Assembly (NCBI GenBank): GCA_009103225.1
Contig: RHPI01001037.1
Coordinates: forward strand, 620,001 to 684,000
Direction: 5' to 3'
Source: Chlorokybus atmophyticus
Taxonomy: Eukaryota > Plantae > Mesostigma and Chlorokybus algae
DNA length: 64,000 nucleotides
The stretch's first letter is position 1. The number at the start of each line of letters is the position of its first letter. The notes under the pieces were generated by a model. That model had not been told where the DNA came from, did no database searches, and was given only the letters and a program-made list of their open reading frames with translations. The position numbers and the translations under genes are program-made. Below are positions 1-61,117 of the stretch, in pieces.

Positions 1-26
1 AAACGGTGAAGTGCTCAGCTAACGGT

Positions 27-69
27 GACCTTACTAGTGTAAAGTGTCCGAAGTTAGGGCACCTTACCC
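27..69 (-). mobile_element. Terminal inverted repeat of a TA-flanked DNA transposon (Tc1/mariner-pogo-like); element body lies left of the window
   Basis: Reverse complement of 27-69 (GGGTAAGGTGCCCTAACTTCGGACAC...) matches 58617-58659 at 39/43. Both copies abut a TA (70-71 and 58615-58616) and similarity stops there. Confidence 0.55.
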
Positions 70-815
70 TAGCAGAACTTGGCTGCATTGACAGCACCTT
101 ACTACGCTGCGCTGCGCCGACAGCAGCTGCGCACCTTAATATTATTAGGTTACAGAAAGAAAAAAGAGTATGCATTTATCGAAGCAAAACATATATATAT
201 ATAAGTGTAGAGCAATGTCGTGTAGTCCATTGTTTTTTCTCTTACTGTGTCTTATTTTGCTCTTACTTTGTATACGCGTGCTCTTACTTCATCTTAATTT
301 TGAGTCTAAGCAAAAGATTACTTTAGCTACATAAAAAGCTCCTAAGCAATTTACTTAAAATCTTATAGTATGTGTACCCCAACCATTTCGAGCGCAGCTA
401 ATTATAAAAATAATTATCTCTTTAATAACACACATATTAACATGCACACGGTATGGAGTCAGGTAGGAAATGCACACACCCACGCATACAATTGGCAAGA
501 CAACAAGACAAAAGGGGCAAGCTTAATTACATTAGGGGCCTAAGTTAGGTGCTTTAATGGCTATGTGCAAATGTAAGGCGAGGCAGTGGGTATGAGCAAG
601 CAGGCACTACAATCAAATAACATGTTACAACAAAGCATGCATACATGTCTAACGAGGTAGTGGTAGTATTGTGGTAGAATAATGGTTACGATATAGCACG
701 GTAGTGATTGTGTGTAACTTTGTATACCAATGATGTAGTGTGGCTGTATGCATGTTGCATTTTTATGTGTCTGCATAACAGTACTTCACATATCTCACAA
801 TCAGCACGTACGCAC

Positions 816-1333
816 TGTCACAGCCCACTCGACCATAAAAGACTTGATGCTTTTATTGTCGATTTGTGGTCATTTAATGTACCTTCCCATTACATTCCCC
901 CCACTTAAGAACGCCGACGTCCTCGGCAGCCCATGCTCAGCTGGGGAATCAGCCCAGGGGTTTGTTAAGGTCGGTCATCGGCCCCACTGCCAAGGACCGG
1001 TCAATTTGGGCCCATACCGGTCAAGGCGCGCAAAGCGCTGCTGCCGGCCCCACACGTCGCATCGCGACATGCAGGTCGCGTCCTGCCGCGCGACTGAACG
1101 TTGGCGCAACTGCCATTAGGCCGGTCGCGATACATCGACGATGGCACATATAAGGTGACCATTTATGATGATAATGGATCGAGAAACGACGACCGCAAAA
1201 TTCGTGTGCAAGGCAGGAATCGGACCCGAGTCTCAAGCCCCGATAACCAATCTCACAGCCCACTCGACCATAGAAGACTTTGTGCATTTATTATTGATTT
1301 GTTGTATGTTATCGTTGCACGCACCCACGAACA
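816..1333 (-). mobile_element. TRIM-like miniature LTR element, family A (old copy)
   Basis: Direct repeats at 816-894 (TG...CA, 79 bp) and ~1251-1333. On the minus strand: PPT GGGGGAA just before the 3' LTR and PBS-like TGGTTATCGGGGC after the 5' LTR. 356-bp non-coding interior. TSD not recognisable and right boundary approximate. Confidence 0.7.
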
Positions 1334-1945
1334 CACAAACACAATCACGTGACTTCCCACGCTGAGAGTGGCAATTGCTGTCAAACATGGACCTGAGAGG
1401 CTGGCTAAGGGAGTGCTAGCTGCGTGCAATGCAAAGAGCAGCAATAATTGCAAGCAGGCGAGGTAGTACACGGAATATTTCCCGCAGATTAGCCCTAATC
1501 CGCATGTGCGGACCAGGGTCAAAGCACCCGATCCCGACGAGGGTCCCCCGCCTTGATCTGCACGCGGGGATTAGGGCTGGTCCCCGACATACGTAATTGT
1601 CCTACGGTCCCCCAAAAACCGAACCAGGGTTGGTGACGCCAGTTAAACATAAGGCAATTACCTTTTATCGGTTGATGGTTCGTCAAGCTTAATTTACCCC
1701 TCGCCCCATGAAAAAGTGCACAGTCTCGGATGATTCGAGCCCAAGCGCGGAGCGTCTTCACCAGCCAATTTGCCATCGGCGATACAACAACATTCGCTAC
1801 CGGTCATCGGCACGTATACATTACATATATATCTTGTACAGTATTAGAGGTAGATAACCCTACTAAAACGATTCAACACCCGATCGCAGTAGCGATCGAG
1901 CTAAATCGCAATACCGACCGCGGCTAATGATATGTATTCGCTTAC

Positions 1946-2011
1946 TTGGTCGCGGTCAAGCCCACCTTTTGCTCTTTTGCAGAGCAAAAAGGTTGGCTTG
2001 ACCGCGGCCAA
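1946..2011. repeat. ~30-bp-arm inverted repeat within a hairpin-rich non-coding stretch
   Basis: Arms 1946-1975 and 1981-2011 are reverse complements with 2 substitutions and 1 indel; 5-nt loop. Confidence 0.85.
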
Positions 2012-2942
2012 ATACCCGGCCTTCATGCTGGAGCAAAAGGTGCGGCCTAACTATGGCTAACCGACCAAATTAGGCCACGGTCAGTTAGCCGACAGCCTAG
2101 ATTCTCAAATACACCACCGCTAGCCGGTACGTGTGGCGCCCGGTTGCCGCAATATTAAAGCAGGCTTGGTTACGGCAACCGTATCTTTTTGTACCACTGA
2201 TTCATAGGTGCGCAAGCCGCAGGGGGCGCGACCAGCCCTGGTCCGCTCAATTGGACCATGCCATCCGGCTTCGGGACCGGACCACCAGTGGCCCGGTCAC
2301 GCCAAACCGATCGCGACACTGGTACGCTACATGGTACTGGACGTGGTCTGCGGGCACCGTACGGCTGGTCTGCGCGTAAAAACCCCTTTGTAGGGTGAGG
2401 CTGCAGCACATGTGATGTGTAACGATACTACTACTTACTTGCTGGTTGGGGCTTGGCAAACTTATGCACAAGCACGAAGGACTTACACCGGAAGTCCCAC
2501 CAGCACCACGGTGCAAGGGAAGTTGCAGCAGCGCACCAAGGAAGGAGAGGATGACCACCAACCTCTCCACACAGCTCCAGCCCCAGGCATTCCCACGCCC
2601 AACACACCCACACACACCACACCACACACCACAAGAGATGAGGGGGAGAGCCCCTTCAACAGCTAACAACCAGGCACCCGACGCACAAGTTGCCCTCTTG
2701 TAAGGCAAACACACATTAATGTTTTAATCACTACTAATTCCATTCCCACTCAAAGATTCAACTTAGCGTTTATTCCACATGGTGCTCTCGAGCTGGCACA
2801 CACGATGTCCAAGGCCACCTAGGCCTTGTCACTATGCGCTGACCTTGTCTTAACAGACTGCACATTGGGAGTATTGAACCATCTCAGACTATCATGAAAC
2901 AAACAATCCTACTTCGGAATCACCAACTCAGGCTCCCCTAGA

Positions 2943-3472
2943 TGTAACATCGGCGCCTTAATCACTAGGCTACGGCAGCAGAAGTCGCTGCCACAAGAGG
3001 AGCCAAATGCCGTTTAGCTATGTCCTACTATAGAATGACATTCCTCCCAACTCATTATCTGTGGGCTAGTGTTATCCCCCATGTCACCTATCGGGCTCGC
3101 CGCGACCTGCCCGCCGCCGCGCAAATCGCGCTCCGCAGCTGGCCTTCGTCCCTGTCCCTATGGGATTGGACCCTCGTCACATGGCGCGCCAACACACGTC
3201 AAATCGCGACCGCTCCGGCGGTCGTAGGCCGTGAGTACCACCGCTTCAACGGGCGCGGTGCTTTCAGTTCATTAATTTGCCAATATTTGCCTTGGATCGA
3301 ATTTCACGGCAACTAGCAGTTCTCGTCCCTATGGGTGGGATTCGCACCTGTGCCGCTCAACTCCGTCACCACTGTAACATCGACGCCTTAGCCCCTAGGC
3401 TACAGCAGCAAAAGTCGCTGCCATAGAAGGAGCCACATGCCATATAACCATGTCCCATACCATGGTGTGACA
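2943..3472 (-). mobile_element. TRIM, family B, inserted in the left LTR of the large element
   Basis: LTRs 2943-3040 and 3373-3472 (TG...CA). Minus-strand PPT TGGGAGGAA and PBS TGGTGACGGAG. Flanks CTAGA/CTATA. Absent from the paralogous LTR at ~13418-13425 (empty site). Confidence 0.9.
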
Positions 3473-3941
3473 CTATAACACATGTACTTGCGGATTGCCC
3501 ACAGGCACCACTTGCCTTGCGACTGTCACACTTATGGCAAATCGCACTACCACAGTACACATCATGTGGTTTGCCAACCTGGCTCACAAACTTGTAACTG
3601 CCACTACCTGTGGCAACTCGCAATACTCGCGATAATGAAGGCTCACATGCCCCAAGCATTGACCAGCTCTGTGCTAGCCCAGAATTAATGCCTTGTGTAG
3701 TTTATCATCATTCAAGGCCCACATAGGCTCAAGAGCGGACCGCATGAGAGCACACGCCATAAGCACTTACACTCGCTTATAAAATGGAAAATCCCACTTG
3801 ATCCCTTCTTACTTACATAAGCAAAGGGCAGAGAATGACTTTTGCCAGCCTTATAGGCGTGACATTCCTCCCCACTTGCTTTGCAACAACCGCGTTGCAA
3901 TAGATGGAACACTTGCACCAGCACAAGCCGGATGCGAGGGT

Positions 3942-4478
3942 TGTCACGATTTGGGAGAAATGATGAGAGACCCCACTCATAGTAGCCTCCTTTGCTACCA
4001 TAGCCTAGTGGTCGGAGCCCACTTGTTACAATGGTATCGGAGCTTGACGTCTCAGGTTCATTCCTGTAGGGGACTGAGGCAGATCTAAGGGCAAAAAACG
4101 TTTGGGGCGGCTTGCCCTAAACTGGGCACAGGTTCGCAACCTGCACGCCGAGCCAATTTAATTTATGGTCGCGTGAGCGGTCGCGCCGCGATGGCAGGTT
4201 GCGCGGTAAGGATGGCAGCTGCAGTTCGGTCGGTTATGATCGTTGTAGGTTAGATGCAAAAGGCCGCAAGTGGACCGGTCGTGGTATGGCCGTGACTACG
4301 TAGACGTGGGCTAGTGAGTGCTTCATTGGATAATGAGGACGTGGGTTAAAATGGGGAGGAATGTCACGATTTGGGAAAAATTCTGACAAACCTCACCCAT
4401 GGTAGCGTCTTTTGCTACGGTAGGAAAAGACGCTACCAAAAGTGAGGTTAGCCTAGTGGTTGGAGCCCATTTGTTACA
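3942..4478 (+). mobile_element. TRIM, family C
   Basis: LTRs 3942-4030 and 4362-4478. PBS TGGTATCGGAGC (initiator-Met tRNA type) at 4032-4043. PPT GGGGAGGAA at 4353-4361. Flanks AGGGT/AAGGT. Homologous over its full length to 59396-59903. Confidence 0.9.
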
Positions 4479-5263
4479 AAGGTGATCAATCCCCGATCGG
4501 AGGCTGCACTCCCTGGTGAAAGTAGTGCAAGTCGTGGCAGTGACAACCAACTGTAATACTGAGTACCAATGCGCGCGGTGTTGGTATGTCATATGAAGAG
4601 GTTGTAGGCATGTGTACATGCTCTCAGGCTCTGAACACACGATCAGAAGTGGCACCTGTGGATTCAAGCTCATTCTCAAATCCTTGAACTTTGCAGCACG
4701 GTTGTTAAGCTGACTGGCTCTCAGATGGTATGTCTCTTTGCCATAACCAAGCTAGTCGATTTGCAAGGTTTCCAAGCTTCATAAACCGGGTTGCCAACAT
4801 AGCAACAAACTCAGACATGAGATCACTCAACTCTAACAGCCATTGGCTCCTCCCCACTTTGGGTAAGAGATACCTCACTGCTTTGCCATCATTGGCACAC
4901 ACTTTTAGCCTGTTTAGCAACTTGACAAACCATGTTTTAAGTGCATAAGCACAAGGCAACTGTTCCACATCAACCGCCATAAGATCCTCCCCACTTGACT
5001 TGTGGACTCCCAGCAGTGCCTTGCCATCATCTCATTCGAGCGCATCAGACATCTTATTAATTCTGCAATTGGCCACTGGTGTCTTACTTACAGCTTTGAA
5101 AGCACAAAATTGGCAAATCGCAAGCACTGGCATAGCATTACTTACATGTGCACCTGTAACGGGAGCAATACTAATAGGGGTATTATTGCTACGTAAATGA
5201 CACATCTGGTATGAATGAGTACATTAAGTACTTATTTATACCTCTTTTCTCCGGGTTTCTCGC

Positions 5264-5314
5264 TTATCAAAGCTGATAATACTTTATCAAAGCTGATAAT
5301 ACTTTATCAAAGCT
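5264..5314. repeat. 2.5 tandem copies of a 20-bp unit TTATCAAAGCTGATAATACT in the Ty3 leader
   Basis: Read directly; the unit contains an internal inverted repeat TTATCA...TGATAA. Confidence 0.85.
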
Positions 5315-5822
5315 TTGGTAAGTCCCAATGGGAGTAGAACCGCCTATCAAGCCTATTTGGTGTCGCATTTCATATATGCGATGACTATAGCCAGATATCT
5401 ATTTGGGTACCTCGTTGCTAGGTACCTTATCGATAGGTACCTGATCTTTGAGAACCTTATCGTTTGATATCTGAGCTCTGATTGGCTCACGTGAGATCTC
5501 TAACGGCAACCCTATCTATAGGGATAACATCTACTTGTGAGTTCAATATTGAGAGACATCAATGTGATATACTCTTGATTTAAAAGGCCTCATCAACTGA
5601 TGGGATCGGATTCAGTCTTCTGCCACAGCGTCATGCTGCCGGCGGCTTGACAGGCTTGTTGTTGTGGTTAAACACAGCCTTTTGCTGTTTGGTAACACTC
5701 CGAATCCAGCCTTTCCTGTTTTGGGACTGGTTTGGACTCTGTCTAGGACTTAAGCAACTTGGGGTCAGGTTTTTATCCTCTCGTTAAACCTAGTCCATTG
5801 GTGAGGTTCTCACCATTCCATA

Positions 5823-7037
5823 TTGCCTGTTTTGCAGACAAATGGAAGAGAATTCGGTGCCCACCTCGAAGGGGAAAGCTCGCATAAGGAGCAACCTTCT
5901 CGTGAGGAGGAGTTTCCATCCATGGAGGATATTGCCAATTCAGATGATGCACCTAATGAGTCTCATGCTGCTCAGGCTGTGGATAATTCGGTGGAACCAG
6001 ACGGACCACCTCCACCACCAACAGGTCTTGAAATCATGATTCGCTTGACGAAACAAAACTTAATGGACCACTTTCTTGGCACCTATGATGAGGATCCTCG
6101 TGAGGCAATTATCTCGCTCATCAACTTCCTCTGTAAGATGGCGGAAGCGGTCTCAAAGCTCACCACCTTTATGAGGCGACATTGGGAGGGTCAGATAGGT
6201 GAAGGCAAACGTATTTTAAACATGATCGAGCGCCTTCAACGCTCTGACAATGGATCACCTGTTCAGGCCCTCGCTCGCCCTGCCGAGTTTGTTCCCAACA
6301 AGCAAGCGGCCATCTTTTATTGGCTCTTGAAGCTGAGACACTATGTCAACTCCCTTCACATTCTTGAGGAGGGGAAGTTGCGTGTAGCTGAATTGCTGAT
6401 TCCGAACGATGCTCTTGCAGAGTGGTACCGCCGTAAGCAACGTGATGCGAACCTTGGGCGAGAAATGAATCGGTTGTGCTGTTTTATGGAGCAGCGATAT
6501 GGTGGTGCAGATCCTGCCCAGGTTGCTCGCAACCAGTTGCATAATTTGCGTCAGAACAGTCGCCCGGTCCAGCAGTACATTCAGGACTTCCAGTCGCTTG
6601 TCAGCAAAATAAATGCTGGCAAGTTACCTATGAGTGACGCTGATCAGCTGGACTTGTTCAGGCGTGGCTTGGGCACAGATCTCGTGCAGCATGTGGCTGT
6701 CAACCTCGCGAGCTTGCAAGAGTGGGCCTCAAAAGATTTGCCAATGCTAATGCAGATGGTTCCTGCTGTGGACAGTGAAAAGCGCTCGCATGCGAACATG
6801 CTGACCACAACTAAAGAGGCAGCCCCCGCATCAGCTGCAAAGCGCACGGCCACTGACAACAAGTCCTTCTCCTTTGTCAAGAAGGTAAAAACATCTTAGC
6901 CTGCTGGTCCGAATGTCGCTGTCAAACCTCACAGCCATATCATTTGCAACTTTTGCAAGAAGACAGGCCACGTCGAGGCAAAGTGCTATGCCAAGCAGAA
7001 CGCAAAAAAGGCCAAGCAACAGAAGGACCAGAAATAG
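5823..7037 (+). pseudogene. gag: Ty3 gag with CCHC zinc knuckle
   Basis: ORF 5823-6899 has a retrotransposon gag-like region (LHNLRQNSRPVQQYIQDFQSL). Reading through the in-frame TAG at 6897-6899 gives CNFCKKTGHVEAKC, ending at TAG 7035-7037. Confidence 0.8.
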
Positions 7038-7455
7038 GAATTGTCCGTGGTTGGTAGTTTTAGTTGAGCACAATGACATTAGAAACTCTGTACTTTTTGA
7101 GAGACTTTCCTCTCTTTACAATGTAAAAACATTATGGAAAAATGTGAGCACACCACCCATGTTAGCAAACACAACTGGTTTTGTTTTTATCAATGTTCCA
7201 TTCTTGCTGTTGGTAATTGGTGTTAAGCAATTACGCGAGTTGCAACTACAACACGCTATCACTGCATGCGTAGTTATCCCTCAATATCATGGCCCATGGT
7301 TGCGATTGTTGAAAGGGGAGAAGTGATTATGCAACTCTCACGCAGAGTTACACGGACATCACCATTACGAGTGATCTTTATCAAGTTTGCAGCACTGCTA
7401 ATGTCGGAGTGCTAATCACGGCACTCCGACATTAGCTACATTTAATGGTCACTCA

Positions 7456-10400
7456 GTGCTACTCCAATGGAGATTGGAGAGTCAATCTATGAGCACACCA
7501 TGTACAGCATTGATCGATACTGGTGCAAACCATAACTTTGTTGAACATGCTTGGGTGAAACGTAATAACATACCTTTCATCAGTCACGTCGCATGTACGT
7601 GCTGCCGGTTCCACCCTGAATGCAATTGGGGAGGTGAAGGGGCGTTTTGTTATTAACAGCCATAAGACCTGACCAACTTTCATCGTGGTGGATAAAGGTA
7701 TCCCCGGGGTGGATGTTGTTTTGGGTAAACAGTGGCACACCAAAGCAGGTTTGCAATTAAACTCTCGAGCAAATACGTGCCATTGTAAGGGTAAACGTAA
7801 GGTGACGTTAAACGCGCCTGTACATTGTTCCGCTCTTCTCTGCTATGCTACTAAAACGTTGCATGCGTAAATGTAAGGAAGTATATTTGATGCACTTACA
7901 GCAGGTTGAGACACCTGTTGAACATGCCGTAACTGACCCTGCGGTGCAATTACTTATGGAACAATACGCAGATGTATTTCAGGATAAACTCCAAGAATTG
8001 CCTCTTGATAGAAACATACATCATACCATTCCGTTGGAAGAAGGGGCAAAGCCACTTCAGGCGCCAGTGGCGGCCTATCCATAAACTAAGTCCCGTAGAT
8101 TACGCGAAAATGGAAAAACAGCTCAAAGAGTTATTGGACAAAGGTTTGGTAACAAAAAGCATATCTCCTTTTGGAGCACTAATTTTGTTTGTGCCCAAAT
8201 TGAATGGCAAGCTACGCATGTGTGTTGATTACTGTGCATTAAACAAGGTAAATGTGAACAACAGATACCCTTTGCCTCGGATTGATGATTTGTTTGATCA
8301 GCTGTCAGGTGCAACAGTGTTCAGCACGCTGGATTTGACCAGTGGTTATCATCAAATCAGAATTCACCCGCCGGATATACGGGAAACTGCGTTTCGCACC
8401 CCAATAGGTCACTTCGCATATAAGGTGTTGCCATTTGGGTTAACAAATGCACCAGCTACATTTCAAGCAGAAATGAGTGCTGTGTTTGCTGACAAATTGT
8501 ACAAGTTTGTACTTGTATATCTTGATGACATTATTGTGTTTAGCAAAACCCGAGAAGAACACCACAAGCATAAGGAATTGGTTCCGTCCAAATTGCGTAA
8601 ACACAAATTCCATGCCAACCTGTCCAAATGCAATGTTGCAAATGACAAACTACCCTTTTTAGAGCATGTGATTGGCAAAAAAGGATTGACCACAGATCGA
8701 AAAAAGGTGTGTGCGGTGAAGGATTGGCCACCACCCAAGGATGTACATCAGTTATGTGCTTTCTTGGGACTGGCTAATTACTTCCGCAAGTTGATGCGAG
8801 CATATTCCAACATGGCAAATCCTTTGACATCTTTACTTCAACAAGATGTTAGATTCGTGTGGACGGAGGCACACCAGGTTCACAGGCACTAAAGATGCGT
8901 TAACACAAGCCCCTGTGTTGACCTTTCCCGACCATATAAAGCCTTTCGTGGTGATCAATGATGCTTCCACCATTGGGTGTGGGACAGTCCCTCTACAAAA
9001 TGACAGACCGTGTGCGTATAAAAGTAGAAGATTCAATCCTGCTGAGCATAACTACACAACCACTGAACAAGAATTGCTTGGTGTGGTGCACGCGTTGCGC
9101 ACATGGCGTTGCTATTTGGAAGGAGTGGAGTTTTTAGTAATTACTGATCACAACGCACTCACATTTTTCCATACGCAACAAAACTTGTCAAGACGGCAAG
9201 CTAGGTGGAATGAGTTCATTTTTCGTTTCACTTTCACTTGGCAATACCGTCCGGGTCGCACCAATATGGCGGATCCACTAAGTCGTAGCCCTGCTCTTTT
9301 GGCACTTACGCGCTCTCGGTATACGCGTAATGCGCAACAGTGTGAAGACCCTTTCGTAAAGGAAATATCCACAAGTTATGCCTCAGATGATTGGTTTCGC
9401 AGTCAAACCAACTTGCAATAGCTTACTGCTGTCGCAATTTGTGGTATAAAGGGGAGCAGATGACAATTCCCAACTCGGGCGACTTGCGTAGACAATGCTT
9501 ACAATCAGTGCACGACCCGCCGTATGCTGGGCATTTGAGTAAACATCAAACACTCAAAGCAGCGCAGCAATTATACTGGTGGCCATCGATGTTAACTGAT
9601 GTGGATTAGTACGTTCGCTCATGTGATGTATGTAAACGTAATAAGCCATTTTGGAAAAAACAAGCTGGATTGCTTAAGCTGTTGGCAATCCCAAAACAGA
9701 AGTGGGATAGTGTTAATAAAAATTTGACTACTGACCTAACTAAAACAGCAGATAAATACATTGCTATTGTACTGTTTTGTCGACCGTCTGACCAAAATGA
9801 TGCATTTTGCCCCGTGTTGCACAATTGTGAGTGCACGAGACTTGGCTCATTGATGTGTGTCAAATATGTTCAGAGTTCACGGTGCCTCGTGAACTCATCA
9901 CGGATCGTGATCCTCGGTTTGTCTCCAAGTTTTGAAGAGCAGTCTGTGAATTGTTGGGGTTACAACAAAACATGTGGTATGCTTTTCACCCGTAAACGGA
10001 TGGGCAAACCAAACGATCAAACCAAATACTGGAGGAAATGCTTCGCCACTATGTGGCTCATGTTCATTTTGATTGGGACAGGTACTTGCCAATGGCAGAG
10101 CTCGCCGTGAACAGTGCGTGGCAGGAAAGTGTAAAGGAAACCCCATTCTTCTTAAATTATAGGATTCGCCTGAACACACCGGTGTCATAGCGCGTACCTC
10201 GCAATGCCCTACCTGTACCAGCGGCAACGGATTTTGCCATTGCTATGCAGGAACATTTGGCTCGAGCCAAGCTATACCTGCCAGAAGCACAAGACAGGCA
10301 AAAAGCTTATGCTGATACACATAGAACAATGGCCACTTTCGATGTCGGCGATAAAGTTTTGCTGAACGCCAAAAACATAACCGTTAAGGGAACAGGTGCC

Positions 10401-10759
10401 CGCAGATTGCTGCCCCGATGGTTAGGTCCGTTCTCTATCATTATTGGAGTTAGTACGCACGCTTATCGACTGCAATTGCCCCCAATGTGCGTACACACAA
10501 CCATGTGAACTTGTTGAAACCTTACCACTTAGACGGTAAAACACAGCCTCCACCACCGCTAGTTGAGGTGGACAGCGAGCTCAAATACGAGGTGGAAGCT
10601 ATATTGGACCATAAGCTAAATAGTCGAGGACGCGCAACTCGCTATTTGGTGAAATGGAAAGGGTATGGCTCAAACCATAACAGTTGGGAGCCCGACAGGC
10701 ATCTTACGCACTGCCGCGAGTTGCTTCGAGCTTATTGGGATTCACGTCATGTCCCGTAA
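7456..10759 (+). pseudogene. pol: Ty3 pol (protease, RT, RNase H, integrase, chromodomain), frameshifted and with stops
   Basis: LIDTGANHNF (protease), LRMCVDY...YLDDII (RT), NDAS...EQELLGVVHAL (RNase H), HDPPYAGH (integrase zinc finger), YEVEAILDH...YLVKWKGY (chromodomain), spread over several frames. Confidence 0.95.
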
Positions 10760-11829
10760 ATTGTGGGCTTGGTTTCATGACAGACCGGCAGTGCAGTTTT
10801 ATTACCACACTATTTCCTGTTATCTCACGGGTATCGATTACTCAAACCCAGGTCTGATCAACTTGAGTTCAACGAAGACGTTGAAAACCTAAATGAGGGG
10901 GGATGTAACGGGAGCAATAATAATAGGGGTATTATTGCTCCCATTACAGCACCCCTGGCTTCGTGCACATACACGTGTCATCACTGCAAACAGTAATGGT
11001 AAACTGCCCAGCTTGAGGGGTCTCAAACAAAACAAAACAGGTGGGTTGTGGTTGTCACCTACACTTTCCACCCCCTCTCAATAGCAGCGTTACTCCTGTA
11101 ACATTGCAACTATCATCAACAACTCTTTCTCGGTTGCTGTGTACGCACATGCATAACCTAGCCTCACATTACTACATCACCTGAATGGTCACCTTAAAGG
11201 GAGCGCTACTTAGCCTTAATCAACCCTTTCTCAAGACCTTGTTGTGTCTCTCCATGTCCGCATATAGCTGGACTCTACCCATACATATACATAGGCATGA
11301 AGACTTGCACAACTCGAACAAGGCCTTGCGTACTACACATTGTAATCAAGTGGCAAGCAACAAGTCTAAGCAAGCTGACATACATTGCCAGAAGACTCAC
11401 AAAGTGACGGGGTTCAAGTCGCATTGGCAGTCCGCTTCATCACATGTAGCAGGGGTTGGGGTTTCTTGCCATATCGCTCTTCTCACCTGCTTAGTACCTA
11501 ATAAACACGAGACAGCTATACGAGATGCATCATACTTGACAAAGGGTACGACATTATGCCCATGTGCTCGCAAGGTCACACAACCTTACCGTGTTGCGTA
11601 CATCGCAAGTTTAAGTATGCACATGTGTACTTAACTCATTCTCCCGCACAGCAATGTTGCATGAGCGGAGAAGCTGTGACATCAAGTCACTATAAGCGAG
11701 TTGCTTATCTATATTTACAGAGCAAACGTCCTTTTGCAATCTCAGTTGCATACATGTATGGCGTAATGCTTCATGTCCCTTCCAGATGAGAGCATGAAAT
11801 CAAACACTTCTTAGCTTGAGCCTCATCGA

Positions 11830-12860
11830 GCTGCATGCTCATGCTCAGCCGTGCCTATCAAAGGTTGAACCATCACCACACAGTGCGGTCACCTAACAGA
11901 TGTATTCGCGTGCATACATGTAGCAAGTGCAGCAATAAGCCAATGCATGTGCAAAGCCGCTCACGGACAGCAAATGCACACAACTTACACAGCAATTCGC
12001 TTGTAACACAGCCTACACCTGGCATGCACGTGTGCGTGCGGCTTCAAACAACACCACTTGATGCAGTCAACAAGACAGGATGCACTCGGGCGCACACGTG
12101 TGCAGCAGGTGTAGCAACAAGTAATCATGTGTGCAAGGCTACGCACAAGCAGCATATGCACACACTCAAACATGGACCAACGTGTCAAACATCCCTTACC
12201 TAACATGGAAGTGTGCATGCAGCTGAAAACAACACCACTCGGTGCAGTCACCATGACATGCACTCATGCGCACACATGTGCAGCAATACACGCGCAGCAA
12301 CACAATGGCACAACTCAGCGTTCCAAACAACCCGTAACTAGCATGGAAATGTGCGTGCCTCTGAGACATCATCATAACGGATGCACATGCACACACACGC
12401 GCGTACATGTATGTGTATGCGCATGCGCGCAGCAAAGTGCACTAGCAAGCAATTGCATGTGCAAAGCTACGCACTCGCAACAAATGCACACCACTAAAGC
12501 ATGAAGCAGCTTCAGACATGGCTCACACCGTGCATGTAAACGTGCGTGCAGCTTAGACAGCAGCATACACATGCATGTACACGCACACGCACGCACACTC
12601 GCGCACACATGTACATCCGCGCAGTAAGTGCAGCAACAAGCATGTGCGTGTGCAAAGCCGCTCATAACAGCAAATGCACACAACTAGTGCACCAATCAGC
12701 GTGCAACATGGCCCATACTGTGCATGTAAGTGTGCACGCGGCTGAGTGTCAACAGGAACACCGCCATGTAGTGCACGCAAGCAAAGGATGCAACACATGC
12801 ACCGTCTAGCAAGTGCACAAGCTGATGGACAAGCATGCACTGCTTTGCAAGGCTTGGAAA
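11830..12860. repeat. CA/TG-rich degenerate tandem repeats in the interior of the large LTR element
   Basis: Recurrent AAACAACACCACT-GTGCAGTCA...TGCACTC blocks (~12045, ~12228) and GCAAAGC-CGC-C motifs about 180 bp apart; units are degenerate. Confidence 0.55.
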
Positions 12861-14602
12861 CAAGTTTCGATTCCGATGTAACGATACCACTGCTTACTTG
12901 CTGGTCGGGGCTCGGTAAACATATGCACAAGCATGAAGGACTTACACCGGAAGTCCCGCCAGCACCACGGTGCAAGAGAAGTTGCAGCAGCGCACCAAGG
13001 AAGGAGAAATTGACCACCAACCTCTCCACACAGCTCCAGCCCCAGGCACACCCACGCCCAACACACCCACACACACCACACCACACCCACAACTTGTTGA
13101 AGAGATGAGCGGGAGAGCCCCTTCAACACTTAACAACCAAGCACCTGACGCACAAGTTGCCCTATTGTAAGGTAAACACAGATTAATGTTTTGATCACTA
13201 TTAATCCCATTCCCACTCAAAGATGCAACTTAGCGTTTATACCACATGCTGCTCTCCCGAGCTGGCACACACGACGTCCAAGGCCACCTAGGCCTTGTCA
13301 CTATGCGCTGACCTTGTCCCAACATCGGAACCAACAAACTCCACCTCGGGAGTATTGAACCACCTCAGATTCTCATAGGAACAACAATCCTACCTCAGAA
13401 ATAGCAACTCAGGCTCCCCTAGTACACATGTATTGGCGAATTGCCCACAGGCACTACTTGCCTTGCGACTGTCACACCTATGGCAAATCGCACTACAGTA
13501 CACATCATGTGCTTTGCCAACTCACAATCTTGTAACTGCCATTATGGCAACTTGCAATACTCGTAATAACAAAGGCTCACATGGCAAAAGCATTGACCAC
13601 CTCTGTGCTAGCCCAGCATCAATGCCTTGTGTAATTTATCATCACTCGAGGTCCACATAGGCTCAAGAGCGGACCGCATGAAAGCACACGCTATAAGCAC
13701 TTGCACTCGCTTAAGAAATGGAAAATCCCACTTGGTCCCTTAGTACCAACATAAGCAAAGGATAGATTGACTTTCGCCAGCCTTATAGGCGTGACATAAT
13801 GGCAATGAGTGCTTCATTCAACATGCATTGGCCATACCACAGGGGTCTTAGTTCGTGCAGCATCACTGCTGCAGCTGCCATGCCGATGCATTGCCATTCA
13901 GTCGAGTATCCAACACTCGCCTTAACTGCACACCATTGCATAGCGGATGCAAGAGTCTACGATCCCCCCCCCCCCCTCCTCCCCCGGATGTACAACAGTT
14001 GTTACGCCTCATATGCTGTATGTTACTAAGTATACGGTATGGTAGTACAAGCAAATAGGGTACATAGATAGCAAGGCAAAAGGCAGATTTGGCCAAGGGA
14101 TATAGCTTTTTATTTCAACTACTACTACTACACCCACTTCACTAGTCTATGTGCATGCCATGTTGTGCAATGCAGCAGCGATGGGCAGGGTGCAGCAGGC
14201 CGAACAACCTGCAGGGGGAGAGGGAGGAGGAAGAGGAGGCAGAAGCTTGTAAGTCCGTGTGATTCCAGCGCGCGTGGGTAAACAGCAAACAACGGCAAAG
14301 GCAATGGTGTGTGGTGTGGTCTGCAGTGATGAGCTAAACCCCTAGGCCCCCAGTGCCGCCACCACCCCACCACTACTGGCCTGTTACAAGTATAGTATGT
14401 TGCTTGGCCCATCGCATGGCCATGAAATTGAGTAAGCAACCTGACGTGCAGTAGCGCTACAGTGTCTTGTTGTGAGCTAATGATGCATAGCAAGACCAAA
14501 CTTGCACTTGCCATGGCATTGATACCATTGCTGAGTTCGATCAGTTCGCACAGACATTGACCATGCACCACCTGCGACATGCAGACGCCTGTGATGCAAG
14601 CT

Positions 14603-17228
14603 TCACAAGTTGAAACTGAGCAGCTGTCCATGCATTGTGGAGTTCCTGGCTGTGGCAATCTGCTGCTGCCACTCCTTTGACTTGCGTTCAATGTAGCTGT
14701 CATAGCCCGCAGCCTTGTTGTCATTGGACAAACGGCTTTCATCTCTTAGCGCAGTTGCTGCTGCGAGCTGAAGCGGTGGGTCATGAAAGGCTTTGGCCAA
14801 TGTGAAAGCTGATGCAAGCAAGTTGCGCGCTGCAGACAGGTCGTGCGCTATCAACGACTCTCGCCCCAGCAGAATTAGCACCTGCGAAACTAGCTGGTGG
14901 TTTGCCATCTTGTTGTGCGCCAGATCCAAGATGCCGCTCAGCGCAGTCCTGTGAACACAACACGCATGAGTGCGCGCGCATGCGTGCGTGTGCTTGTGAC
15001 AACCATTACAAGAGCATCCCTGCCATGTTGCCAGATGTGTGCAAAGCATCACGTCATGGGGGCAAACGTTTTGACAACTTCAAGAAGCGCACGTACTTGG
15101 CCTCTTGGTGGTTGCCTTGCCGGCTGTTCACGACTGCAAGCGCATACTTGACAGCGGCTTCTTCGTACTTTGAGCTCAGCCGATCCTGCTCGCGGTGTAT
15201 GGGCTGCAGTATGTCCAGAGCATCGCTATCGGCAGTGTGACCTCCGATGCACAGAGTAGTTAGCGCCATGAACACCGCCGCAAGTACTTGCTCAGTCCGG
15301 TGGAAGCTCGTCTGCCAACACATCACCAATGTCAAGCACAAAATGTTGGCTGACATCATGTCATTGCCGGAGCAGGCCATGGCGCCAAGTGTTGCGTACT
15401 TTGCCATATGAGGCGTACTGTTTTAGAGCCTCTTTGAAGCAACAGGTCGCTACGGCATAATGAGCGCAGAGAACATGAGCTGTCGCCCGCTGGTACGCTA
15501 ACAATGTTGGGTACGCAATGACAAGTGACACAGCAGAAGCAACCTCCTGAATATGGCAACACTGAAGTGAGATGGATGCACTATGCATGCCAGCTGAGCA
15601 ATTAAACAGTCACAGCTATACCTTCTGGGCCTGTTCCAATTTCATCTGCGTGAGACTCAGCACAGCCAAATTCTCAAACGCAACGAAGCGCATAGGCAGA
15701 TAAGGCCGCACCAACTCAACAGTCTTCAGCGACAGCTTTGATTCAGTGAGCCCAGCAGAGAAATTCAGGTTAAGAAGCACTTCTTGAGACTTGCGTAGCA
15801 CAGTTTCCAAGCATCCTCTTGCCGTCTTCTGACCGTTGCCCTTTTTTCGCTGATTGATGGCTTCCAGTAGATGTCGCAGCATGTTGAGTCCGCTCGGCTG
15901 AAGCCAGTTGCAACTGGCAAAGTGTGACTTCTCAACTTTGTGGCACGCCTGACGCAGCTGTTCCAGGCCGTCATCAGGCACGCCATGGCCTGATGCCACT
16001 GAACACAAAACTTGCAGCATGAGATGCATAGCAGGTATCTGAGCAAGTGCGGTTGATACGCTTGCATCGGATGTGGCTGGCACACTCTGCAACATGGCAC
16101 ACAACATGTTTCTTGTGAGCACAGATACACCATTCAATATTGCATGCTTGCAGGCACCACAAGGCACATAGGTAAGCTGCTCATGTGTGCTTTCAAAGTT
16201 CACGCACATTTGCAGTAAACATGACCAACGATAACTTAAAGAGGTTCTAAACCATCAACAAACCTTGCTGACCTGAAACATGGATGTCTGAAGCACTGTA
16301 CTTGTGCTTAGTGCCTTCACAGCCAAGCCGTACTCTCCCTTAAGAAGACGCACATGCACCGAGGCCAACTGCAGCAGCGCCTACAGACGCAACTATTAAC
16401 TCACGTTGTGACATGCTTGACGCAAAGTCACAACCAAGTGTGCCACCTTACGAGCAAGCAGCTTAATGTCAGAGCAATCTGCCATGGTTGTGATAATGGT
16501 CTCCAACAGCTGCAGTGCTCCATCCAGATCGCCTTCTGTCTTGAGTGCATCCCCAAGCTGCAGTGCGAGATCGGCTTTCCAGCATGTCATGACCCTGCAC
16601 ATGTGGCGTTCAGCACAACTGGCCACATGCGTTGCACGCACAAGAACAGAATGCAGCGCACCAATCCTCGTCCCCAGAAGGGATGGTTGCTTCGCATATC
16701 TGCAACCCACGCCTCAGCACTTGCTTCTGCAAACGTGTGGCTCCAAGTGCTGCATAGCAGCGGCCCAGCTGACTGCACGCCAGGCATTTCAAGTTCTCTT
16801 GTCTAGGGATCTGTTGCAAGAGCACTTGCTGCGGGAACACCGTGTGTCAGCTCGGAAGGAATCTGTTATTGGCATTCCATTCCGGATGACTATCATACCG
16901 CTCGCTCCAAGTGCGCCTTCGCTTCGTGTAGGTTGTGCGTCTGGCTGTAGAGTATATCAGCCAGCTTGAGGCGCGTTTTCACCTCAATCAACGGGAGAAA
17001 CGCTCTCCTGCTTTGGCACAGAGCTTCCAAGCACTTGATGGCCTCCAAGTATGCCCCCTGTGACAGCATGGCTTTGATGCAACAAATTCACAGCAAGAGC
17101 ACACAAAAGTTGCAGAGAGCAGTGACAACTTGTTGCACTCGGAAGCAGATACGCTGTAGCACCTGCGCTTCAAACTCATCCGCAAGTCTCCAAAGCACAT
17201 CAGCAGCACCCAGCACTCCCATTGCCAT
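14603..17228 (-). CDS. MAU2: Cohesin loader subunit MAU2/SCC4 (multi-exon)
   Basis: Spliced exons give LWRLADEF...AIKCLEALCQS...LIEVKTRLKLADILYSQTHNLHEAKAHLERA and QLVSQVLILLG...ARNLLASAFTLAK...D..LQ, matching the SCC4/MAU2 N- and C-terminal motifs as I recall them. Confidence 0.85.
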
Positions 17229-49521: not shown

Positions 49522-49594
49522 CGATTCCACTGGGGATCGAACCCAGAATCTCCAGCTCCGTAGGCTGGCGCCTTATCCATTGGGCCATGGAACC
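49522..49594 (-). tRNA. tRNA-Arg(ACG)
   Basis: GGTTCCA-TGGCCCAATGGATAAGGCG-CCAGC-CTACGGA-GCTGG-AGATT-CTGGG-TTCGATC-CCCAG-TGGAATC-G folds as a 73-nt cloverleaf, followed by TTTT. Confidence 0.97.
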
Positions 49595-57933: not shown

Positions 57934-58616
57934 TCTGTGAGCGCCCTAGAGCAGGCCTCCCCTTTCTTGTTTAGCTCCAGGAACCACGCCGCCGCCGCCA
58001 CATCCGCCCTTCCCACTCGACCATGATGGCCACTGTTAGGCCTCGACACACAAACCCTAACTAGCTCACTAGCTCCTTGCCAACAGCGCCTCAAGAGCAA
58101 CGCGTCCGTCAGCTGTCCTGGGCGTACATACACTGCGCCTCAAGCAAGCCCCGAACACGTACCAAAGCAAACAACAGTGTCACAGCTGCGACGCAGCACA
58201 AGTAGGCCTAGCCGCAGCCTGGTCTTCCACAAGAGAAGCTTGCTCCTGTTGGGTTTAAGGCTTCGTAGAGGAGGTCTTGGGCAACAAGCACCCGCTCACT
58301 GAACCACTCCTCATCCGCCGCCGCCGCCGCCGGCACAGCAGAGATGGAGTCGGGCGCGCATGCAATGTCGCCTGCTGGCAGGATTGCGCGCCACACAATA
58401 ATTACGTGACGTATTTGCCATGTTGCGTCGTAATGTCCAAGTTTCTTCCAAGTTGGGTCTACACTACAGTAACTGTAGGTTTAGGGACCTGGCCTAGTAG
58501 GGGCCCTAGGCAGAGCTGTAGCGTTACTCTGGTACACGGTGCATAATTCTTAGCTGGGATGGAGGCTGAGTCGGTCTGTGTGCGGCGGTGAATTGGTAAA
58601 TTTGTGTATCTGAGTA

Positions 58617-60817
58617 GGGTAAGGTGCCCTTACTTCGGACACTTTTTACTAATAAGGTCGAACCTGATGTAATTTTAAGCCGTTTTGAGCTCTTAATAAC
58701 TCATCTGAAAGCTCATTTGATGGCCTATCGGCTGGCCTCGTCCTCGGATTTTTCTCCAATGGCATGCTCTCATGAGCAGCAGGGTAAGACCACCAAAACT
58801 TGCAGCCGATCTAATGTGGCTGATCCTAACTTTGGACCAGCTTGAATCGCATGTAGGTTGTAAGGCCGACGGTGGTTGTGGCGGCGCAACGGCGATAAAG
58901 TGCCAGGCAGTGCCGCTAGGTTGGTGGCGCACTGGTGGCGTGGCTTACGCCAAAGAGCGGCAGGTACAACGAGCCTGCAGGTGAGCTCAAGTGTTGGTTG
59001 GACTGCATTGTGTGTATGGCCTCCTTGTAAGCTCAAGCGTTGGTTGGACTATCTAAGTGTATGCACGTCTTGTGAGCTCAAGTAGTGGTTGGACTGCCTA
59101 CATGTATGCACGCCTTGTGTGTTTGCATCTTTGTGTGTTTGTTGGTTGATAACCACACACGTTTGCACAGCATGTACACACAGCAAGCACACCGATTCAC
59201 ACATGATGTACAGCGAATGGTGTATGCAGAGTTGCATGTATCAGTTGTGAGGCGTAAGCAGGTTTATATGTACAAGTGAACAAGCGCTATTTACATGTGG
59301 TCCAAGCTGTGCTAAGGCTAAGACTAGTAAAGGATCTTGGTGAGGCGCAAGCCGCCTCTCTTGCATGCCCATGCACGATTTTTCGCCGGTGTGATTGTAA
59401 CTATTGGGGCCCGACCACTAGGCTATGGTAGTAAAAGACACTACCATGAGTGAGGTCTGTCACAATTTATCCCAATTCGTGACATTCCTCCCCAAATTAA
59501 CCCATGAGTTCCTCATAATCCAATGAGGCACTAGCCCACGTCGCCGTTTTCGCGGCCGTACCACAATCGGTCTGCCCACAGCCTGTTGGATCCGGCCAAC
59601 GAACGGTCCTGACCGACCGAACGGCCATCCTCACCGCGCGACCTGCCATCGCAGCGCGACCGCTCACGCGGCCTTAGGTTGAACTGGCTCGGCGCGCAGG
59701 TCGTGATCCCGCGCCCAGCCTAGGGCAAGCCGCCCCAAATGTTTTTGTTTTTGCCTTGGATCCGCCTCAGTCCCCTACGGGAATTGAACCTGAGACGTCA
59801 AGCTCCGAAACCGTTGTAACAATTGGGGCCCGACCACTAGGCTATGGTAGTAAAAGACACTACCATGAGTGAGGTCTGCCACAATTTATCCCAATTCGTG
59901 ACAGCCGGTGTTGCCTCGAGTAGAGCAGGTCTTGCGACACTAGCACATGTGAGGTCTTGCCCCTTTATGTTAGCCATGGGCCTGCTTCTGCTTGCTCCTC
60001 ATCCTCAGTAATGCTACTGACTACCTCCTTGTTGCGCAGGGAGGCAGCGAGCACTGCAGCTTTTTCAGCTGTGGCTGCCTCGCGTGCTTCGCGTGCTTTC
60101 TTCTGTTGCTTGGCCGCCGCTGCGGCATCTTTCTCCTCAGTCTTCTCCCTCAGCTGCTGTGCCTTCTCCTGCGCCTTGGCCTCCTCATCTGCTACTGCCT
60201 CCAGCCTCTTCCTCCTCATGTCTTTCCTCCTTGCTACCCGTGCTGCCACCAGACGTTGTTTCTCCTCAGCCTGGTCGCGCAGGTGTTGAATGATTTCCGG
60301 GCTAGTGAGGATGGTGGTTGAACGCGGATAGGATCTGCCTGGTCGGAGCTTGAAGCTGATATATTCGGGCAGCACCTCCTCTGTGCCCAACTCCTGCTCC
60401 TCTTTCGGACAGTCACATACTTGTGTGTTGTCCGTATTTGCCTCCGGTCTTCATCAGCACCAAACTCTGCACTGATCAGGGCCTCCAAGAGTGTGGAACT
60501 GATGCCTGGCTCTGCTGTCTGTGGTTGCGCCGCTGGCTCATCCTCGGGTCATGCAGTCTATCGTCCAAGGCGTGGTGGTCTATTGGCGACAGTCCTGCCA
60601 AGTACTGCTTGCAGTGTGTGCATGCTCTGGCTTGATAATGCACAGGTGTTTGGACAGTGCTGTTGTCAGGAGAGAGGGTGTGCCCCTCCTCCCTTTAATC
60701 CCCTACCCCAACACCACCACCAGCCTCGCCGCCGCCGCCGCCACTGCCGGGGCAGTTGCCAGAGCAAAAGATGCTCTGGCTATGGCGGCCGCTGCGTTAG
60801 CAGCGCCGCCATGCAGC
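58617..60817 (-). mobile_element. Probable DNA-transposon remnant: TA-flanked terminus plus decayed charged C-terminal coding segment, interrupted by a TRIM and an LTR element
   Basis: Terminus matches 27-69. Minus-strand frames at 59965-60490 give RSTTILTSPEIIQHLRDQAEEKQR...K/E-rich coil, reminiscent of pogo/DDE_1 transposase tails. No catalytic DDE region is visible. Confidence 0.4.
59396..59903 (-). mobile_element. TRIM, family C, second and younger copy
   Basis: 89-bp LTRs (59396-59484, 59815-59903) differ at 2 positions. PPT TGGGAGGAA. Degenerate PBS CGGTTTCGGAGC. 330-bp interior aligns with 4031-4361. No clean 5-bp TSD. Confidence 0.92.
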
Positions 60818-60849: not shown

Positions 60850-60995
60850 TGTTATAGTTAAGTAACACTACATTAAGGCCTTAACACTAGGTTAACGGCC
60901 CTAATAAGGCTTAATAGGCTGTATAATCCCGTTGGGACCCTTATTTAATCCTAAATAAGGGCGGGGAACCTCTATGGAGGTAGCACACCGTTACA
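60850..60995 (-). repeat. 3' LTR of the right-hand Ty3 element (left boundary approximate)
   Basis: Begins TGTAACGG directly after PPT GGGGGGGAA (complement at 60996-61004). Distal end could be at 60818, 60850 or 60861. Confidence 0.65.
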
Positions 60996-61117
60996 TTCCC
61001 CCCCACTTAGGTTTCAATGTCCTCATTGAAGGGTTAGCAAAGCCCCATCACGAGTCACAAAACGAAAGCAGTGAGAGAACCAGGGCCGAAGCGGTAAAGA
61101 TGTCTGCCAGCACCCTT

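Follow-up and report, generated by a model that had tools for sequence, protein, structure and literature searches.

Among LTR elements, transcription by Pol III has been validated in a single case, Cassandra, and was recently proposed for one group, Helenus/Ajax. Helenus is a tRNA-derived TRIM of the proposed TRIMp3 group, with Helenus-1_SMo of Selaginella as its only plant member, and its small-RNA part lies within the LTR, both boxes included, as the preliminary description of the present DNA had stated (Kojima 2024, PMC10886601). Cassandra, a 5S rRNA-bearing TRIM of vascular plants, is described as the sole validated TRIMp3 lineage; its type 1 (5S) promoter is contained wholly in each of its LTRs, which are a few hundred bp long. 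We know of no explanation so far for how a Pol III unit, with its internal promoter and T-run terminator, could yield the terminal redundancy that LTR replication needs.

The elements described here were found in a 64,000-nucleotide stretch of DNA from Chlorokybus atmophyticus (the whole stretch analysed, hereafter the window). They resemble Helenus in being small non-coding LTR elements with a PBS, a PPT, 5-bp duplications and tRNA-type A and B boxes, and in both cases Pol III promoter function is read from conservation; moreover, the PBS of Helenus-1_SMo is identical to that of one algal copy. The layout is different, however. In Helenus the tRNA-like part, both boxes and (in Helenus-1_SMo) a TTTT all lie inside the LTR, upstream of its end, whereas in the algal elements the B box is found past the LTR and the PBS, the T4 run lies upstream of the A box, the LTR of two families appears to run tail to head, and the junctions are called neither by the Rfam tRNA model nor by ARAGORN with default settings. 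In none of the four copies are both boxes within the LTR. The likeness to Cassandra is that of a TRIM with a (here putative) internal Pol III promoter, but the algal boxes are of type 2 and are split by the end of LTRs of only 69-117 bp.

Two further comparisons are useful. Like tRNA-derived SINEs (SINE2), the algal elements have a degenerate tRNA head that retains mainly the boxes and their spacing, in a short unit of Pol III size without internal T4; SINEs, however, are copied by the machinery of LINEs and have no LTRs, PBS or PPT, whereas the algal elements have all three, together with 5-bp duplications. With classical TRIMs (Katydid, Wukong, SMART and others) they share size, LTR-PBS-PPT-LTR anatomy, an iMet-type PBS and nested or tandem arrangements. 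We found no paper describing a box pair split by the LTR end and the PBS. To speak of a new class, in line with the earlier suggestion of a possibly undescribed one, is too strong, and we prefer to speak of a variant of the TRIMp3 idea.

Four short LTR elements and their boxes

The window contains four copies (A, B, C1 and C2, the only ones seen directly) of non-coding LTR elements of about 500 bp. These are genuine LTR elements, with TG..CA ends, PPTs resembling GGGAGGAA and PBS-type sites that start 1 nt past the LTR. Their LTRs measure 69-117 nt and the complete elements 504-537 bp, and no ORF of at least 200 aa lies inside them. Target duplications of 5 bp flank A (GTGCG/GTGCG), B (TATAG/TCTAG) and C1 (AGGGT/AAGGT); C2 is the exception, with an 8-nt flank repeat plus a 3-nt filler and no clean 5-bp duplication. 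The LTR opens with a short U3 (about 45-55 nt) bearing a TATA-like AT-rich motif.

The family A element occupies 816-1319 on the minus strand (504 bp; duplications at 1320-1324 and 811-815), with a 69-nt 5' LTR at 1251-1319 and a 79-nt 3' LTR at 816-894. Its A box, TGGTCGAGTGG, is at 1260-1270, with a second copy in the 3' LTR (825-835), and 1 nt upstream of it is a T-run motif (1272-1278) reading GTCTTCT in the 5' LTR and GTCTTTT in the 3' LTR (837-843). Beyond the LTR follow a PBS-type site at 1237-1249 (TGGTTATCGGGGC; TGGTCATCGGAGC in other genomic copies) and the B box GGTCCGATTCC at 1216-1226, and the PPT AAGTGGGGGGAA at 895-906 adjoins the LTR start TGTAA. Family B, also on the minus strand, spans 2943-3472 (530 bp; 5' LTR 3373-3472, 3' LTR 2943-3040, PPT 3041-3050), with the A box TAGCCTAGGGG at 3392-3402 enclosed in a D-arm-like GCCT-8 nt-AGGC, a PBS-type site TGGTGACGGAG at 3361-3371 and the B box GGTGCGAATCC at 3338-3348; the A-box copy in its 3' LTR, TAGCCTAGTGA, has one mismatch.

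Family C is represented by two copies. C1 lies on the plus strand at 3942-4478 (537 bp; 5' LTR 3942-4030, 3' LTR 4362-4478, PPT 4351-4361), and its 3' LTR carries a 28-nt inverted duplication. Its A box TAGCCTAGTGG is at 4001-4011 (a second one is at 4449-4459 in the 3' LTR), and at 4032-4043 is the PBS that it has in common with Selaginella Helenus-1_SMo, TGGTATCGGAGC; the B box at 4055-4064, GGTTCATTCC, is one base short. C2, on the minus strand at 59396-59903 (508 bp), is the youngest copy, with LTRs 98% identical. It has A boxes at 59834-59844 and 59415-59425, a B box without mismatch at 59780-59790, a PBS-like site at 59802-59813 and a PPT at 59485-59495. The textbook boxes of this young copy (TAGCCTAGTGG and GGTTCAATTCC) are accompanied by a poor PBS, CGGTTTCGGAGC, and PBS positions 5-6 are variable among families and copies.

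The motifs of the preliminary description proved accurate when compared with the type 2 Pol III consensus (A box TRGYNNARNGG, B box GGTTCRANTCC). The three A boxes quoted are exact, as are the second A boxes of A and C1 and the two of C2; the B boxes of A and B have one mismatch, that of C1 is the box minus one base, the gaps of 33 (A), 43 (B) and 43 nt (C) were reproduced, and the D stem of family B (GCCT-8 nt-AGGC) was located as quoted. The split layout was likewise borne out: in every copy the B box is outside the LTR, 11 nt past a PBS of 12-13 nt, and the two boxes occur together only where a 5' LTR meets the interior, with the LTR end and the PBS between them. The B box lies 24 nt past the LTR end in 4/4 copies, and none follows a 3' LTR.

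The pairing of boxes is genuine and much too frequent for chance. The window has four exact A boxes with a B box (at most one mismatch) 25-60 nt further on, three in TRIMs and one in the true tRNA-Arg gene at 49522-49594, against 0.01 expected (mean of 200 first-order Markov simulations of the window); the 33-nt box spacing of family A is also that of this tRNA-Arg. The A-box consensus by itself is common in the window (24 matches versus 14 expected), and a family-A-like TGGTCGAGTGG motif at 58013-58023, which has no LTR context, was taken as chance.

Kinship of the families and conservation of the boxes

The three families had been called unrelated, and their possession of the same boxes had been used as an argument for function. 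They are indeed only 51-58% identical in global alignments, but they have in common the PPT/LTR start GGGAGGAATGTCA, the G[TA]CTTTT motif that shortly precedes the A box, the A box itself, and a colinear block running from the PBS through CGGAGCTTGA to the B box, with identical PBS-to-B-box spacing in A, B and C. To judge from these blocks, A, B and C are diverged relatives belonging to one old lineage. The sharing of the boxes is therefore conservation inside one old lineage and not three independent inventions.

The Pol III promoter motifs are both present and conserved. A and C1 are older copies, and each departs from the B box by a change peculiar to that copy: the other genomic copies read a perfect GGTTCGATTCC in family A (1223 G>A) and GGTTCAATTCC in family C (an A inserted after 4059). 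These bases are majority bases from the contigs of a sequencing run (355 M letters, depth about 3 on a unique identical piece) that probably represents DNA of this organism sequenced at low coverage; two other runs contained nothing of this DNA. The B-box 11-mer has been retained while the flanking would-be T stem has not (it is only 2 bp in B), and a DNA-binding site therefore fits better than an RNA hairpin.

The LTR hairpin and its likeness to a tRNA gene

In families B and C the LTR contains a covarying hairpin, 8 bp long in B and C2; two of its base pairs differ between these two copies with full compensation. In B it lies at 3402-3424 (ATGGCAGC-GACTTTT-GCTGCTGT, with a 7-nt loop that includes T4) and again in the 3' LTR at 2972-2994; in C1 it lies at 3979-4001, with a 3' LTR copy at 4399-4421 (ATGGTAGC-GTCTTTT-GCTACGGT), and in C2 at 59844-59866 and 59425-59447. 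Its 3' arm coincides exactly with the 7 nt that precede the A box, corresponding to tRNA positions 1-7 before T8 (the 5' strand of the acceptor), and its 5' arm followed by G-NN-TTTT resembles the 3' end of a tRNA gene with its terminator (compare TGGAATC-G-TTTT at the end of the real tRNA-Arg). The B and C LTRs thus look like the tail of a tRNA-type gene fused to its head, and R of a retroelement must lie just there. Family A has no acceptor-like spacer, the T run abutting the A box, so that this permuted-tRNA reading suits B and C better than A.

Sense-strand runs of at least four T occur only at the G[TA]CTTTT site of the LTR. The interiors are free of them, except for a single run in A that is specific to this copy and missing from others; by comparison, there are six A runs in the C1 and C2 interiors. 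The RNA predicted for C2, from the G of G-NN-TTTT to the T4 of the 3' LTR, folds with its ends paired (z = -4.0), whereas that predicted for the old copy B folds without closed ends.

The junctions do not amount to a tRNA-gene cloverleaf. They have no anticodon stem, and the 3' strand of the acceptor does not follow the T arm. The Rfam tRNA model gave no match at E<=10 on the junctions, even with stretches of 121 and 131 nt, and a search of all Rfam families (positions 1-8000 and two junctions alone) gave no meaningful family, only sub-threshold miRNA-like matches on unrelated hairpins. ARAGORN with default settings called the true tRNA-Arg in the window and no TRIM junction; with relaxed settings it drew a weak cloverleaf in 3/5 junctions at ps80 (3.5% background) and in 5/5 at ps70 (24% background). 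A comparison of family A with tRNA-Gly was not counted as evidence.

A candidate Pol III transcription unit and the alternatives

On balance we lean towards the view that these elements are one old TRIM lineage built around a Pol III transcription unit derived from a tRNA gene, and probably mobilised by chromoviruses. The sequence itself shows the anatomy, its non-random character, the kinship of the families, the hairpin covariation and the map of T runs; Pol III use, the ends of the transcript and the partner are what we infer from it. The element would begin with the short U3 and its TATA-like motif, followed (in B and C) by the 3' strand of an acceptor stem (7 nt), G, two more nucleotides and TTTT, and directly afterwards by the 5' strand complementary to it (7 nt), T8 and the A box with its D arm, that is, the 5' end of a tRNA gene. 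The LTR end would take the position of the anticodon loop and the PBS that of the remaining anticodon arm, the T-arm/B box following in the interior. Binding of TFIIIC to the two boxes would require a 5' (or tandem-internal) LTR with a PBS and a B box behind it. From a start within or close to the conserved G[TA]CTTTT, Pol III would cross the T4-free interior and stop at the same T4 in the 3' LTR, yielding an RNA of about 430 nt with 7-9 nt of terminal redundancy and ends able to pair like an acceptor stem, to be copied and inserted by a chromovirus reverse transcriptase and integrase. 3' and solo LTRs, which have no B box, would be silent. Cassandra and Helenus/TRIMp3 support this model as precedents.

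A candidate for the type of autonomous partner is the 3' part of a chromovirus (reverse transcriptase, RNase H, integrase and chromodomain) at 60991-64000 on the minus strand, which extends past the window end, its PBS region lying outside. The PPT and LTR start TGTAA of family A are nearly those of this chromovirus (60991-61010). A protein search with it gave no near-identical protein (the best match had 62% identity across roughly half of the query, and 57% was reached with nearly the whole query aligned). Contigs of seven chromovirus relatives were read instead, a weak control given that these come from other organisms; three of the seven have an iMet-type PBS, with neither an A nor a B box at the corresponding positions, none has the box pair, and the box module therefore appears to be TRIM-specific. 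Two pattern scans of metagenome contigs for the split layout gave no match, which carries little weight for exact-match patterns.

Several points count against the model. If transcription starts upstream of the T4, Pol III must pass a TTTT within about the first 10 nt of its transcript, and if it starts downstream, no R is left. The missing spacer of family A, the poor PBS and duplication of C2, the variation at PBS positions 5-6, the unclosed fold of B and the failure to match a tRNA model have to be set beside this.

The alternative that survives best, although we regard it as rather unlikely, is that the elements are transcribed by Pol II or by read-through, as is mostly assumed for described TRIMs, and that their tRNA-like pieces are mimics at the RNA level, serving for end trimming of RNase P/RNase Z type or as an aid to packaging or priming for chromovirus proteins. 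Hairpin covariation indeed shows selection on pairing and not on a promoter, the predicted C2 RNA is more structured than its shuffles, and the TATA-like motif, about 30 nt upstream of G[TA]CTTTT, is equally usable by Pol II. The cloverleaf, however, is not preserved (no anticodon stem, a 2-bp T stem in B, no match to the covariance model), and what has been retained is the 11-mer box sequence and a tRNA-like spacing; the U3 is only about 45-55 nt, past a start site there is no space for a poly(A) signal of its own, and the interiors avoid sense-strand T4 runs.

It is less probable still that the boxes are a functionless relic, persisting by descent from an ancestral TRIM that captured a fragment of a tRNA or of a tRNA-derived SINE. 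Repbase has many LTRs with tRNA fragments, according to Kojima (PMC10886601), and sharing among related families is by itself no proof of selection; yet the boxes stand at consensus amid near-random surrounding identity, the youngest copy has them perfect, and the decayed copies depart from the majority base of their family exactly in the box.

We consider it very doubtful that the boxes are contact sites of the primer tRNA, aiding the initiation of reverse transcription as an extended PBS (compare box 0/1/2.1 of Ty1 and the bipartite PBS of Ty3). The PBS does lie between the two motifs, there is partial self-complementarity in the T-arm sequence, and in L002, an autonomous relative, a small hairpin (GAGG-TTAATT-CCTC) comes right after the PBS, but this hairpin is missing in L001 and L005, and the motif is in the sense (tRNA-like) and not the antisense orientation, 11 nt from the PBS and so too distant to extend primer pairing. 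An extended PBS was ruled out on this spacing and orientation; we also know of no complementarity to the plant initiator tRNA (that of the host lies outside the window). Finally, chance likeness to degenerate consensus motifs, for which the frequency of the A box alone might speak, is effectively refuted by a pair that recurs at tRNA spacing, and in the same relative place, in every TRIM copy.

Returning to the Pol III unit, we would propose, tentatively and as a reading that may well prove wrong, that the genomic RNA is a Pol III transcript with the shape of a giant opened-up pre-tRNA, in which G[TA]CTTTT would be 5' leader, 3' trailer and the 7-9-nt R together, the ends pairing as an acceptor stem so that the 3' end is held beside the 5' end for first strand transfer. 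(The LTR hairpin as a mediator of this transfer by cDNA annealing was rejected, since the cDNA end and the 3' arm region are of one sense.) If this were true, the LTR would be the tail of a Pol III RNA joined to its head, with a promoter complete only at 5' junctions, and there would be a self-consistent route from a tRNA-type gene to an LTR retrotransposon, one that resolves the terminator problem of Helenus-type layouts, in which TTTT separates the tRNA-like part from the PBS.

In the algal layout, promoter, terminator, R region and LTR boundaries would make joint sense, and it predicts defined transcript ends, an uncapped oligo-U RNA of about 430 nt and silent solo LTRs. For annotation there is a risk that such split-promoter junctions are mistaken for tRNA pseudogenes or SINEs. 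Finally, these elements extend tRNA-type TRIMs to an early-branching streptophyte alga, and the PBS that C1 has in common with Helenus of Selaginella hints that the two are linked within the plant lineage.

Miniature elements with a common design

Positions 816-4478 hold three small LTR elements, and a fourth lies elsewhere in the window. Family A (816-1319, minus strand) is flanked by the perfect 5-bp duplication GTGCG and has one LTR of 69 nt and one of 79 nt; family B (2943-3472, minus) has LTRs of 100 and 98 nt and flanks TATAG/TCTAG; family C is represented by C1 (3942-4478, plus), with LTRs of 89 and 117 nt and flanks AGGGT/AAGGT, and by C2 (59396-59903, minus), which matches C1 at about 80% identity and has LTRs 98% identical to each other. 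All four have LTR ends of the form TG..CA, a purine tract preceding the 3' LTR and a PBS-type site beginning 1 nt past the 5' LTR (TGGTATCGGAGC in C1; the other elements have variant forms, and positions 5-6 differ among families and copies), and none contains an ORF of at least 200 aa. These elements are TRIMs.

The three families had been described as unrelated, a view that we do not retain. Their global identity to one another is 51-58%, and they have in common the PPT/LTR start GGGAGGAATGTCA (GGGGGGAATGTAA in A), the motif G[TA]CTTTT directly upstream of the A box, and a colinear block, TGGT..CGGAG(C)TTGA..(8-9 nt)..GGT.C.A.TCC, with equal spacing from PBS to B box. The promoter-like design that they have in common is therefore inherited. 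The conserved blocks have held their position while the remaining sequence diverged almost to randomness.

Several details of individual copies deserve mention. C2, the youngest copy, has a poor PBS (CGGTTTCGGAGC, opening with CGG and not TGG), and in place of a clean 5-bp duplication its flanks (59383-59915) both carry the 8-nt ACACCGGC, shifted by 3 nt, with three extra bases (ATC) between the end of the 3' LTR and this repeat; C2 could have inserted in a non-canonical way or have been rearranged later. In the 117-nt second LTR of C1 the hairpin region has been duplicated in inverted orientation over 28 nt (4389-4449), forming a 30-nt near-perfect palindrome that resembles a product of template switching at this hairpin. 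The 94 nt past the 3' LTR of B (2849-2942) open with what resembles a PBS and B box in decayed form (..GGGGAGCCTGAG..GGTGATTCC), and contigs of related copies connect 2848/2849 with 3480/3486, omitting both B and these 94 nt; B may be what is left of a tandem TRIM (LTR-interior-LTR-partial interior). A further PPT/LTR start, AAGTGGGGAGGAATGTCA, lies directly left of C1 (3860-3877, minus) and repeated AAGTGGGGAGGA motifs lie to its right (4848-4860 and 4985-5000); C1 and B appear to be nested inside a larger, ill-defined LTR-type element without an A box. Two long near-perfect hairpins (1480-1587 and 1949-2008), which gave sub-threshold matches to miRNA families in Rfam, are probably inverted-repeat transposon remnants and not miRNA genes.

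A box pair spanning the LTR/PBS junction

All the A- and B-box motifs of the preliminary description, the two halves of a putative tRNA-type Pol III promoter, were found at the positions quoted. By itself the A-box consensus is no rarity (24 matches in the window against 14 expected), but the combination of an exact A box and, 25-60 nt downstream, a B box with no more than one mismatch occurs four times (in A, B, C2 and the tRNA-Arg gene at 49522-49594, the window's only genuine tRNA gene) against a simulated mean of 0.01, and C1, whose B box is one base short, is a fifth case. The gap between the boxes is 33 nt in family A, the same as in the window's genuine tRNA-Arg, and 43 nt in B and C, as in tRNAs whose variable arm is long. 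The B box of each copy is beyond the LTR, 11 nt past the PBS.

The boxes of C2 are of textbook form (TAGCCTAGTGG and GGTTCAATTCC). For the old copies A and C1 we read the corresponding bases in contigs of one public run with related DNA, a run of unknown kind that is probably low-coverage DNA of the same organism. In these contigs, other copies of family A carry the consensus base (1223 G>A, giving GGTTCGATTCC), at the C1 position other copies have an A inserted after 4059, which gives GGTTCAATTCC, and the TTTT downstream of the B box of family A is private to the window's copy (1197/1198 A>G elsewhere). These observations argue for selection on the boxes in active copies. The B-box 11-mer is kept while the flanking would-be T stem is not (just two pairs are left in B), which favours a protein-binding DNA site; such a site would fit the pattern of conservation better than an RNA hairpin.

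That the junction is itself a tRNA can be rejected: Rfam covariance models gave no tRNA match at E<=10, either in 8 kb of sequence or in searches confined to the junctions (121 and 131 nt), and the sole default ARAGORN call in the window is the genuine tRNA-Arg. At relaxed thresholds ARAGORN does draw cloverleaves on the junction sequences (three of five at 80%, against 3.5% of control segments, and all five at 70%, against 24%), a result that is not independent of the B box because ARAGORN keys on the T loop. The junctions lack an anticodon stem, and what they resemble is the head of a SINE: the boxes and their spacing are present, the D arm of B is good and the T arm is partial.

A possible tail-to-head reading of the LTR

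Both LTRs of B, C1 and C2 contain a hairpin with an 8-bp stem and a 7-nt loop, G[AT]CTTTT; in C1 one mismatch interrupts the stem in both LTRs, and the loop of the 5' LTR has decayed to CTCCTTT. Between B and C2 two pairs are changed on both sides (C-G to T-A), and the pairing is therefore under selection. The 3' arm is exactly the seven positions preceding the T that opens the A box. In a tRNA the 5' strand of the acceptor (positions 1-7) precedes U8, and the window's tRNA-Arg has the same register. After the 5' arm come G, two bases and TTTT; the tRNA-Arg gene ends with TGGAATC-G-TTTT, that is, acceptor 3' strand, discriminator and terminator. This gene (tRNA-Arg(ACG), minus strand) is genuine, and its terminator, exactly TTTT directly after the discriminator base, suggests from one example that four T are able to end a Pol III gene in Chlorokybus.

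In B and C, the LTR thus looks like the tail of a tRNA-type gene joined to its head: U3 would end as the 3' end of such a gene and U5 would open as its 5' end. R is where the 3' and 5' ends of the RNA of an LTR element always meet, and a Pol III start is expected 8-16 nt upstream of the A box; terminator and start zone would coincide at the R point. With a start upstream of the T run, Pol III would have to pass TTTT in the first ~10 nt of the transcript, and a start downstream of it would leave no R. Family A suits this reading less, its T run abutting the A box and, in the 3' LTR, belonging to the 3' arm of another hairpin, of 7 bp.

Sense-strand runs of at least four T occur only at the LTR G[TA]CTTTT site, bar the copy-specific run in A, which is the only one in the four interiors (together roughly 1.3-1.4 kb), while six A runs of at least four are present in the interiors of C1 and C2; this asymmetry is a weak indication, in the direction expected of a Pol III unit. 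The predicted C2 RNA from the loop G to the T run of the 3' LTR (426 nt) has its ends paired in both the minimum-energy and centroid folds (z = -4.0), and that of the old copy B does not (z = -0.1). An AT-rich TATA-like motif, read by eye in A, B and C2 at ~30 nt upstream of the loop G, would suit Pol III (TFIIIB) or Pol II alike.

A likely chromovirus partner and the relation to known TRIMs

A chromovirus pol (61118-64000, minus, open to the window edge, the element's 5' end falling beyond it) encodes RT, RNase H, integrase, SH3 and a chromodomain; its best named protein matches are from green algae, and its PPT/LTR start, CTAAGTGGGGGGGAATGTAA, is nearly identical to that of family A. It is a likely partner of the TRIMs. 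Three related autonomous chromoviruses from public assemblies (53-55% protein identity to the window element) have LTRs ending in ..TTACA or ..TTTCA and the PBS TGGTATCAGAG(C/G), matching the canonical plant initiator-tRNA form, TGGTATCAGAGC. In all three, the LTR end lacks a nearby A box and the PBS is not followed by a B box, so that the box pair seems specific to the miniature elements, the control being chromoviruses of other organisms. Another retroelement (5823-8892, plus) has a gag ORF (5823-6899) and an RT ORF (7972-8892), and no recognisable paired LTRs were found for it within 4400-16000.

Helenus elements are defined as TRIMs whose LTRs hold tRNA-derived sequence, and TRIMp3 has been proposed as a name for TRIMs with Pol III promoters (Kojima 2024, PMC10886601). 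The sole plant Helenus, Helenus-1_SMo of Selaginella (PMC10886601), has in its published consensus a PBS identical to that of C1, TGGTATCGGAGC (supplement of PMC10886601). Its LTR contains the complete tRNA-like sequence, the two boxes and a TTTT, and no box-like motif follows its PBS, whereas the B box of the Chlorokybus TRIMs is outside the LTR, which places them beyond the Helenus definition. The PBS common to Helenus-1_SMo and C1 differs from TGGTATCAGAGC at one position, which would form a G-U pair. No description of the split layout was found in the literature on TRIMp3, Pol III/box B TRIMs or Chlorokybus TRIMs, and exact-pattern scans of metagenome contigs gave no relatives.

Of the preliminary interpretation, the identification as TRIMs, the occurrence of the box pair far above chance and the placement of the B box beyond the LTR all stand; the families are not unrelated, and their design is inherited. 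If the promoter works, these TRIMs would fit the wider TRIMp3 idea. We think it somewhat probable that they form a chromovirus-dependent lineage driven by a tRNA-derived Pol III promoter straddling the LTR/PBS junction, this being the most likely reading, and the split layout in Chlorokybus would then be a previously undescribed variation on the Helenus/TRIMp3 theme.
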